A stretch of DNA of 64,000 bases from Octopus sinensis. Lineage: Eukaryota. Position 1 is the stretch's first letter, and each line of letters starts with the position of its first letter. A program made the translations under genes and the position numbers. Positions 53,699 through 55,763 of this stretch are shown here, one piece after another. The notes beneath the pieces were generated by a model that was not told the DNA's origin, ran no database searches, and saw only the letters and a list, made by a program, of their open reading frames with translations. The stretch spans positions 10,540,001 to 10,604,000 of the forward strand of contig NC_043024.1 of the NCBI RefSeq assembly GCF_006345805.1, read 5' to 3'.

Positions 53699-53890
53699 AT
53701 GTGTGTCTCAGCGACTCTCTTTGCTTCTCTATTGTTATCCGTGTGTGCGCTATCAGTGTCATCTCTCACCACCGATTCCCCTGAATTCACAGACACATTC
53801 AGCTCTCTATATACGACAAACCTCAAAGAATTCAATGACTTTCCCATTTATTTCGATCAGAAAATTCCGGAATGGTTAAAAGGAAATCTG
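53699..53890 (+). CDS. Carotenoid cleavage oxygenase (BCO/RPE65/NinaB superfamily) coding exon 1 of 2; CDS join(53699..53890,54363..55763), 530 aa
   Basis: Acceptor tttctcag ends at 53685, ATG at 53699. Encodes hydrophobic [22 protein letters not shown], then ...[10 protein letters not shown] (family motif IPxWLxG). Phase-0 donor CTG|gtcagt joins in frame to IRNG. Confidence 0.88.
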
Positions 53891-54362
53891 GTCAGTATCT
53901 ATATTTAAATCTATCTATCTATCTATCTATCTATCTATCTATCTATCTATCTATCTATCTATCTATCTATCTATCTATCTATCTATCTATCTATCTATCT
54001 ATCTGTCTGTCTGTCTGTCTGTCTGTCTGTCTGTCTGTCAGTCAGTCTATCCGTGTGTGTATGTGTGAATGCATCTGTGTGTTTGTATCCCTTCTCCATT
54101 TGACAACCGGCGTTGCCTTATTTATGTCCCTGTAACTTAGCACTACTGCCAAAGTGACCGACAAAATAAGTACTACACCTCCTCCTCCTTTTTTTTAAAA
54201 AAAAGTGCTGATGTTAATTTGTTCGACTGGACCCTTTAAGGCGGCGCTCCAGCATGGCCGCAGTCCAATGACTGAAGCAAATAAAAGATACAAGATTAAA
54301 TATGAAATATATTCCTGCCATTTCTCTCACCTAAATATTTCGTTTTACTTCATTCATTGCAG

Positions 54363-55763
54363 ATACGAAATGGTTTTGGTCAGTTTGAAAACGGCAAAAG
54401 GCATTTTCTCCACATGTTCGATTCATTTGCCAAACTGTCGAGCTGGAAGATAACCGGAAACAACACAGCTCTTTTTTCAACGAAGTTTGTAAAGAGTTCT
54501 ACTTACAATCAAAGCATGGCCACAGACGACATTGCTCCGTATCTCACGTTTATCGGCGTCGAACCACCTTTTAGTCGATGGAAGCAATTTAAGTCTATCA
54601 TAAATGGTTTGGATAACATGAACGTCAACGTCTATTCTTATCACAAAACGGCTAAAGCAAACGGTCAAGATGGCAAGGGTTGTTTTGCACTTACAGATTA
54701 TTGGAAAATGTATGAATTCAACTGTACTACTTTACAGACCATTTCTGCATTCGAGGCGCCAGTTCCTCAGAAGTCATCACTTGGTTTCTTAAACCTCATA
54801 TCCACGGCCCACCCTCTGCCCGAATTTGGCACAAATAACTCTTTGTTATTCCTATCGACGTTGAGCTTGGTTCCTTGGGTGAAAAGTTCAGTGAAGTTTA
54901 TTCGGATTCATACAGCAGAGAAGCGAGAAGTCATTGCTAGTGTACCCGTTGACCAAATACCCTACATGCATTCTTTTTCTACGACCGAGCATTATGGGAT
55001 ATTGTTCTGCCATCCGATGTATTTGAACATTCCTAAATTTCTCAAAGAAATGCACCCGTTCGATGGTATGGACTGGTACGGGGACAGACCGATTGATGTT
55101 AACATAATCAACTTGAAGACGGGCGAGATTATAAAAATGAAAACAGAAAACAGCTTTGTCATGCACCACGCAAATGCCTACGAGGATGAAGATGGAAATA
55201 TCATTGTAGACGCAGTCGGTTACGATGATCCGTTATTTGTAAAATCTATGTTAGTAGAGAATATGGTGAATCCAGCCAAACGAAAAAATATCCCGTTTTC
55301 AGCCCAGATCAGACGATATATTTTCAACGTTCAAAACAAGACAAGCAAAGTTCATACATTTTCCAGACCTTCGAACGAAACATTTCTCACTCGGTTCGAT
55401 TTTCCGACGATTAACGAAAATTACCGAAGTAAACCTTACTGTTTTCTGTACGGCGTGGCATTAAGGGCAATAGATAATAATTTAACAAGTATAGCTTTAA
55501 TCAAGAAGGATGTCTGCGAAAAAGGAAGAAACAAATACTATTACAAGACCGGTGTGTACGTGAGCGAAGCCATTTTCGTTCCGACACCAAATGCGGAAGA
55601 AGAGGACGATGGCGTTTTGCTACTTCCGGCGGCAGACGCATCAACAAATAAACATTATCTTTATGTAATAGATGCAAAAACCATGACCTTGATAAGTCAA
55701 GCGGCACTTCCTACGACAGTCCCTTACACATTACATGGCCATTTCATTCCCGAAAAACTGTAA
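54363..55763 (+). CDS. Carotenoid cleavage oxygenase coding exon 2 (1401 nt, nearly the whole beta-propeller)
   Basis: Reads directly on the + strand (ttgcag|ATACGAAATGGT ... AAACTG TAA at 55761-55763), although the track says minus. Four Fe-ligand His motifs: TAHP, YMHSF, MHHANAYED, LHGHF. Also RNG, HMFD, DNMNVNV, DFPTIN, SEAIFVP and EDDG. Confidence 0.95.
   Translation: MRNGFGQFENGKRHFLHMFDSFAKLSSWKITGNNTALFSTKFVKSSTYNQSMATDDIAPYLTFIGVEPPFSRWKQFKSIINGLDNMNVNVYSYHKTAKANGQDGKGCFALTDYWKMYEFNCTTLQTISAFEAPVPQKSSLGFLNLISTAHPLPEFGTNNSLLFLSTLSLVPWVKSSVKFIRIHTAEKREVIASVPVDQIPYMHSFSTTEHYGILFCHPMYLNIPKFLKEMHPFDGMDWYGDRPIDVNIINLKTGEIIKMKTENSFVMHHANAYEDEDGNIIVDAVGYDDPLFVKSMLVENMVNPAKRKNIPFSAQIRRYIFNVQNKTSKVHTFSRPSNETFLTRFDFPTINENYRSKPYCFLYGVALRAIDNNLTSIALIKKDVCEKGRNKYYYKTGVYVSEAIFVPTPNAEEEDDGVLLLPAADASTNKHYLYVIDAKTMTLISQAALPTTVPYTLHGHFIPEKL

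Follow-up and report, generated by a model that had tools for sequence, protein, structure and literature searches.

The stretch of Octopus sinensis DNA analyzed here (NCBI RefSeq assembly GCF_006345805.1, contig NC_043024.1, positions 10,540,001 to 10,604,000; hereafter the window, 64,000 nucleotides [nt] in full, in which all positions are counted from its first letter) contains an intact gene for a carotenoid cleavage oxygenase (CCO) with all catalytic residues present. Judged by sequence scores, by its 90%-identity cluster and by motifs, the product is a member of the BCOL family, and it is very probably a signal-peptide-bearing, soluble, extracytosolic enzyme that cleaves carotenoids with Fe(II). 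A reading made from the sequence alone had proposed a CCO-family enzyme that enters the secretory pathway, and this is supported by hydrophobic N-termini in nearly all scorable homologues, by stop codons ahead of the signal-peptide ATG in a transcript-like contig, by a conserved exon/intron arrangement, by the published TargetP score of an orthologue and by the presence of a lancelet family member, BCOLg, in culture medium.

Gene model and secretory N-terminus

The gene consists of two coding exons, and the features of its 5' part are as follows.

53699-53890, forward strand: coding exon 1 (192 nt, 64 codons; ATG at 53699), whose product is the predicted signal peptide plus about 40 first residues of the mature enzyme, to ...PEWLKGNL
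53699-53764, forward strand: predicted cleavable signal peptide, codons 1-22, based on hydropathy, -3/-1 residues, low model confidence and fast divergence
53891-54362, forward strand: sole coding intron (472 nt, GT..AG, phase 0)
54363-55763, forward strand: coding exon 2 (466 codons plus TAA at 55761-55763), the remainder of the seven-bladed CCO propeller
53645-53647, forward strand: upstream in-frame ATG

Splicing of exons 1 and 2 gives a protein of 530 amino acids (aa) with the C-terminus ...FIPEKL. An exact-sequence look-up found it identical to XP_029652640.1, "carotenoid isomerooxygenase-like [Octopus sinensis]," and the gene model therefore equals the RefSeq model. Exon 1 closes with the donor CTG/GTCAGT (the slash marks the splice site), and the intron, which holds (TATC)n and (TGTC)n microsatellites, ends in a pyrimidine-rich tract and CAG at the acceptor ...TTCATTGCAG/ATA. 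A tandem paralogue was not found in the window; tblastn with the protein as query, run on the entire window, matched the two exons alone. The 90%-identity cluster of the product comprises O. vulgaris CAI9742275.1 (530 aa), O. bimaculoides XP_014781013.1 (530 aa; 93% identical outside the N-terminus) and O. vulgaris CAI9742274.1 (548 aa).

The most hydrophobic 19-residue window of the entire protein starts at residue 2 (Kyte-Doolittle value of 2.15). There is no second transmembrane-like segment, the next-best 19-residue window anywhere reaching 1.25 at residue 226, and KDEL or HDEL is absent from the C-terminus. The uncharged stretch ends in SVSS and is followed by a polar acidic linker (LTTDSPE); small residues satisfy the -3/-1 rule at several sites, including those after residues 17, 19, 21 and 22. 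Residues 1-29 had a predicted local distance difference test (pLDDT) value of <50 in the AlphaFold2 model and lay outside the fold, with confident structure from about residue 30, where alignments to solved structures also begin. Moreover, residues 1-30 are 73 to 83% identical between octopus species, whereas the remainder is 93 to 99% identical, and faster N-terminal divergence is the usual pattern for a signal peptide. The gene model, the hydrophobic N-terminus and the absence of both a retention signal and a second membrane segment, as well as seven sequons and four His residues described below, were all found where the sequence-only reading had placed them.

That reading had left to be seen whether orthologues share the hydrophobic start, and they do. 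When an N-terminus was scored by an 8-residue window near the start with a Kyte-Doolittle value of ≥2.0, 26 of 28 scorable homologues had a hydrophobic one, among them proteins of cephalopods, gastropods, bivalves, a chiton, the nemertean Lineus and Branchiostoma; the homologue of the flatworm Macrostomum, which the filter did not score, also opens with a leucine run. Since the hydrophobic N-terminus recurs in distant orthologues, it is more than chance. Furthermore, a transcript-like cephalopod contig of 1,828 nt from Logan (L002), which encodes the 53%-identical protein P0004, has an uninterrupted open reading frame (ORF) across the octopus intron position and in-frame stops 12 codons 5' of the signal-peptide ATG.

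Published data point in the same direction. TargetP gave the O. bimaculoides orthologue XP_014781013.1 a signal peptide (SP) score of 0.965 and a mitochondrial targeting peptide (mTP) score of 0.024, class S (Poliakov et al. 2017, Sci Rep 7:13192; PMC5643517, Table 1). Lancelet BCOLg expressed in HEK293F cells was present in the concentrated medium (Fig. S5 of that study) and was not palmitoylated, and "the secreted BCOL subfamily" is the term used in the abstract (Uppal et al. 2020; PMC7221588). Mitochondrial targeting of the kind known for BCO2 was considered and rejected, since the first 42 residues of the octopus protein contain no Arg or Lys and the published mTP score of the orthologue is so low.

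The upstream ATG lies in a frame that is open from 53492. A start there would prepend MAFANRIHFLSFLRKGPT and yield an isoform of 548 aa, and the 548-aa O. vulgaris isoform CAI9742274.1 (P0082) is annotated as starting at the equivalent ATG. Its context, GGCATGG, is called good; an out-of-frame ATG at 53640 precedes it. Between the two in-frame ATGs, at 53670-53686, a polypyrimidine-AG sequence (tttctttcatttctcag) resembles a 3' splice site, and a 5' untranslated region (UTR) may be spliced in just 5' of the ATG at 53699. The sequence-only reading had counted use of the upstream ATG as a refutation of secretion, which was mistaken: that start merely adds a positively charged stretch of 18 residues in front of the same hydrophobic core. 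Another Logan contig (L001), which encodes P0083, proved not to be a transcript but genomic DNA (90% identical) from a different octopus species; the conserved intron end is still present in it, and hence it gives no evidence on the 5' UTR.

Several observations weigh against secretion by way of a cleaved signal peptide. A transcript of O. sinensis was not found, and translation may start at either 53699 or 53645. The n-region of the shorter form carries no positive charge. The published TargetP score is that of the O. bimaculoides orthologue, of which the first 30 residues are only 73% identical. Four homologues (P0012, P0024, P0042 and P0047) lack a hydrophobic N-terminus as annotated; they may have mis-annotated starts or be intracellular derivatives. 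The number of sequons for N-glycosylation, 7 compared with 5.0 ± 2.0 when the mature part was shuffled (P = 0.23), is at chance level. Finally, no more than "a significant fraction" of the BCOLg was secreted, and membrane and cytosolic fractions were probed for it as well (PMC7221588). The inferred localization is independent of the choice of start, because both starts keep the same hydrophobic core.

The partial release of BCOLg and its probing in membrane fractions would also fit an uncleaved signal anchor, which would make the enzyme a membrane protein of type II whose catalytic domain is luminal, or retention in the endoplasmic reticulum (ER) or a lysosome-like compartment, for example in digestive gland cells. 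If translation started at the upstream ATG, the hydrophobic core would be located about 20 residues from the N-terminus, after a segment with positive charge, as it is in some signal anchors. We nevertheless regard anchoring or retention as quite improbable. The small residues at the end of the uncharged stretch and the polar acidic linker after them are like those of cleaved signal peptides, the h-region is short (about 17 residues) and interrupted by Ser and Cys, a C-terminal retention motif is absent and the published TargetP call is "S."

The Argonauta model P0002 starts at MFSSLY and has no signal peptide, and many database homologues are N-terminally truncated; exon 1 could thus be an artefact of gene prediction and the real protein cytosolic or mitochondrial, like BCO1 and BCO2. 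This is hardly credible. Exon 1 is needed because it encodes residues 30-64, which are confidently folded (pLDDT of 88 to 97) and align with the BCOLg structure 9plv from residue 27 and with the archaeal oxygenase NdCCD from residue 9. In addition, the BCOL genes of Lottia gigantea (L003, 2001-6913) and Branchiostoma lanceolatum (L004, 2001-5322), which are orthologous or paralogous to the octopus gene, have exactly two coding exons. Their phase-0 intron is at the same place (GTL/VRNG in Lottia, GTF/VRNG in Branchiostoma and GNL/IRNG in octopus), and their exon 1 encodes a hydrophobic start and the first conserved residues. Since this structure is common to Lottia, Branchiostoma and octopus, exon 1 is ancient and not a prediction artefact. 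The stops before the signal-peptide ATG in L002, the published mTP score of 0.024 and the N-terminus devoid of Arg and Lys argue likewise. An apparent further copy of exon 2 (38% identical) within the Lottia intron, which would have meant alternative catalytic exons, was rejected; it was the Branchiostoma locus L004.

Fold, catalytic centre, cysteine pair and sequons

The Pfam family PF03055 (RPE65) matches residues 55-527 with an E value of 9.6e-80. For residue conservation, 70 homologues from a large protein collection were aligned with the octopus protein. The positions of interest are listed below.

54459-54467, forward strand: sequon N97-N-T, the best-conserved sequon (a sequon within 2 alignment columns in 50/62 homologues)
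54810-54812, forward strand: His214, iron ligand 1, invariant (71/71)
54969-54971, forward strand: His267, iron ligand 2, invariant (71/71)
55164-55166, forward strand: His332, iron ligand 3, invariant (71/71)
55440-55442, forward strand: Cys424, Cys in 68/71 homologues
55515-55517, forward strand: Cys449, Cys in 69/71 homologues
55734-55736, forward strand: His522, iron ligand 4, invariant (69/69 with the residue present)

Acidic residues are kept at D176 (71/71), D/E410 (70/71) and E466 (69/69), which we take, by comparison with RPE65, to be the second-shell positions. The FDG-type motif is present as F83-D84-S85-F, and of the 63 homologues that extend over D84, 62 have it; the consensus is FDGF, and the change from Gly to Ser is specific to octopus. 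The AlphaFold2 model, built on a 44-sequence alignment, had a mean pLDDT of 89.7 and a predicted template modelling (TM) score of 0.88 (pTM). As the library for Foldseek we used the PDB to April 2026 without 9plv, and within that library the best structural match was archaeal NdCCD (6vcf; target-normalised TM-score of 0.92, root mean square deviation of 2.7 Å, 28% identity), followed by NinaB, C. elegans BCMO, RPE65 and ACO. The CCO matches had a probability of 1.00.

In the 44-row alignment, Cys424 and Cys449 are found in every BCOL-type row except that of Solemya velum (P0039), and they are missing from all 8 more distant, non-BCOL rows and from NdCCD. According to the AlphaFold2 model, the two residues bracket a single beta-hairpin (strands 425-430 and 442-447), and the natural reading is that they probably form a disulfide. 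In the S. velum protein both cysteines are replaced (by R and Y), and as annotated it lacks the hydrophobic extension at the N-terminus; the gene model may be faulty, or the protein may be an intracellular derivative.

The seven sequons are N97 (NNT), N113 (NQS), N184 (NCT), N222 (NNS), N389 (NKT), N402 (NET) and N437 (NLT). The sequence-only reading had called the protein glycosylated. This was too firm, and enrichment of sequons was rejected as evidence of glycosylation, the count being at chance. Positional conservation is confined to N97 and a site near N435-437. At the N97 site GNGS/T is typical of molluscs; 35 of 69 homologues have a sequon no more than 2 alignment columns from N437, and 27 of 67 have one as close to N113. 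From this pattern glycosylation appears likely at N97 and perhaps occurs near N437.

Relation to BCOL and other carotenoid oxygenases

The best sequence match in the PDB was BCOLg ("Beta-carotene oxygenase like g") of Branchiostoma floridae, the type member of BCOL (9plv; E = 4.5e-91, residues 31-528); a literature search found no paper on this structure. The BCOL (BCO-like) clade was defined from lancelet, nematode and mollusc sequences and treated as an old independent clade whose origin was left undecided; its members do not have the PDPC(K) motif, which every other animal BCO/RPE65 protein carries, and XP_014781013.1 is listed in Table 1 as a BCOL that is predicted to be secretory (PMC5643517). 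The statement of the sequence-only reading that it knew of no characterised example is thus corrected by the literature (PMC5643517, PMC7221588): a secreted family of animal carotenoid oxygenases, which includes an orthologue of the octopus gene, is already known. Mildly new are the BCOL-specific C424/C449 pair, the positional conservation of the N97 sequon and the finding that a structure of two coding exons is shared from cephalochordate to cephalopod.

With BCOL proteins, BCOLg among them, the octopus protein has in common the CCO fold, the four His, the FDG-type motif (FDS in octopus), the loss of PDPC(K), a predicted N-terminal signal peptide and a length of about 520 to 540 aa. It differs in that it is only about 35% identical to the lancelet BCOLs, and lancelets have 6 to 8 BCOL copies compared with one in the octopus window. 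In BCO1, BCO2, RPE65, NinaB and BCMO-1/2 one finds the same PF03055 domain, propeller (query-normalised TM-score of 0.75 to 0.79) and 4-His Fe(II) centre, but by sequence these canonical animal CCOs match more weakly (E = 1.4e-33 for C. elegans BCMO, 2.7e-31 for NinaB and about 1e-25 for RPE65). They reside in the cytosol, in mitochondria or on the cytosolic face of membranes and have no signal peptide, and BCO2 has a mitochondrial presequence (PMC5643517). The loop of BCO/RPE65/NinaB proteins contains a palmitoylated PDPC(K) (PMC7221588), where the octopus protein has EPPF. Indeed, PDPC was found neither in the octopus protein, with the loop FIGVEPPFSRW, nor in any of the 70 homologues. Since PDPC(K) is absent, the octopus protein is not to be filed as BCO1, RPE65 or NinaB, and the database names "retinoid isomerohydrolase," "carotenoid isomerooxygenase-like" and "beta-carotene 15,15'" are misleading for it. 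The vertebrate BCO1, BCO2 and RPE65 genes have many introns, compared with the one coding intron of the octopus gene.

Nearer than the canonical animal CCOs is NdCCD, the carotenoid cleavage dioxygenase of Nitrosotalea devanaterra (PDB 6vcf/6vcg/6vch), the second-best PDB sequence match (E = 1.8e-49) over the full length. It differs in being an archaeal protein of 472 aa without an N-terminal signal sequence in the aligned chain; at the positions of Cys424 and Cys449 it has R and L, and in the loop it has DPC where the octopus protein has PPF.

In carotenoid-producing E. coli, lancelet BCOLg removes beta-carotene and lycopene and favours cis isomers (PMC5643517). The true substrate of the octopus enzyme could still be something other than a C40 carotenoid, such as an apocarotenoid, a retinoid-like compound, a stilbenoid or another dietary alkene. 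Substrate specificity shifts readily in the CCO superfamily (PMC5643517), the closest non-BCOL structure, NdCCD, was crystallised with an apocarotenoid (title of 6vch) and the sole assayed BCOL is the lancelet enzyme, with its identity of about 35%. We consider a substrate other than a C40 carotenoid unlikely, given the consumption of both carotenoids by BCOLg and a published branch test that detected no functional shift on the branch to BCOL (P = 0.22).

If the octopus enzyme is a secreted carotenoid oxygenase, the signal peptide of about 22 residues from exon 1 would bring the nascent chain into the ER co-translationally and would be cleaved off around residue 22. Inside the ER, the seven-bladed propeller would fold, the C424-C449 disulfide would probably form and an N-glycan would probably be added, at least at N97 and perhaps also near N437. 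The enzyme would then be released or kept in a luminal compartment; release into the medium was shown solely for lancelet BCOLg in HEK293F cells (PMC7221588). Fe(II) held by H214, H267, H332 and H522, with D176, D410 and E466 in the second shell, would add O2 across a C=C bond in a polyene of the carotenoid type. The loss of the PDPC(K) loop fits a soluble extracytosolic enzyme for which docking on the cytosolic face of a membrane is no longer necessary. Where BCOL acts in molluscs, what its natural substrate is and why an Fe(II) oxygenase is exported are the biological questions that this family poses.

As to origin, the gene is near-intronless from lancelet to octopus, and its similarity is closer to archaeal and bacterial carotenoid cleavage dioxygenases (CCDs) than to animal BCOs. 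These are hints of a horizontal origin. One rather speculative scenario, which we think improbable, is that a prokaryotic NdCCD-like oxygenase was transferred into an early bilaterian in ancient times and then gained the signal peptide, the phase-0 intron, the disulfide and the glycan site for the extracellular breakdown of carotenoids; the site of action of the single octopus copy would then be hemolymph, saliva or digestive fluid.

Two groups of database relatives deserve mention. The record P0084 (APO15142.1, "carlactone synthase [Camellia sinensis]," 528 aa) falls into the 90% cluster of the BCOLs of the cuttlefish Acanthosepion/Sepia pharaonis and has a BCOL-type signal peptide; it looks like a contaminant or a mislabelled record, an origin from the tea plant being implausible. 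The metagenome relatives P0076 and P0077 (about 26% identity) open with lipoprotein-like signals (MKKILGSLVAGILCVSCAS... and ...FPILVIVFMTGCFPQ...). If these two are bacterial, export of CCO-family proteins is not confined to animals.

Neighbouring sequence

On the reverse strand, at 51432-53009, an ORF of 525 aa matches RVT_1 (E = 4e-23) and zf-RVT; it is a fragment of a non-LTR retrotransposon whose end lies some 700 bp upstream of the ATG of the oxygenase and which is directly followed by an (ATT)n microsatellite at about 52990-53120. A second, weaker reverse transcriptase fragment lies at 62788-63627, also on the reverse strand. At 60908-61360 on the forward strand, an ORF of 150 aa matched the Pfam entry HCV_NS5a_1a (E = 4.2e-06, 27 bits), barely above the cut-off. 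A viral gene at this place was rejected, since the translation is a tandem repeat of about 19 to 20 residues (..GSCGSPRAMWIPESHMDLR..) and the match a repeat artefact. Microsatellites are dense around the oxygenase gene, with (AT)n upstream and (CA)n/(GT)n just 3' of the stop codon (53220-53270, 55890-55970 and 56260-56340), a density typical of octopus genomic DNA.

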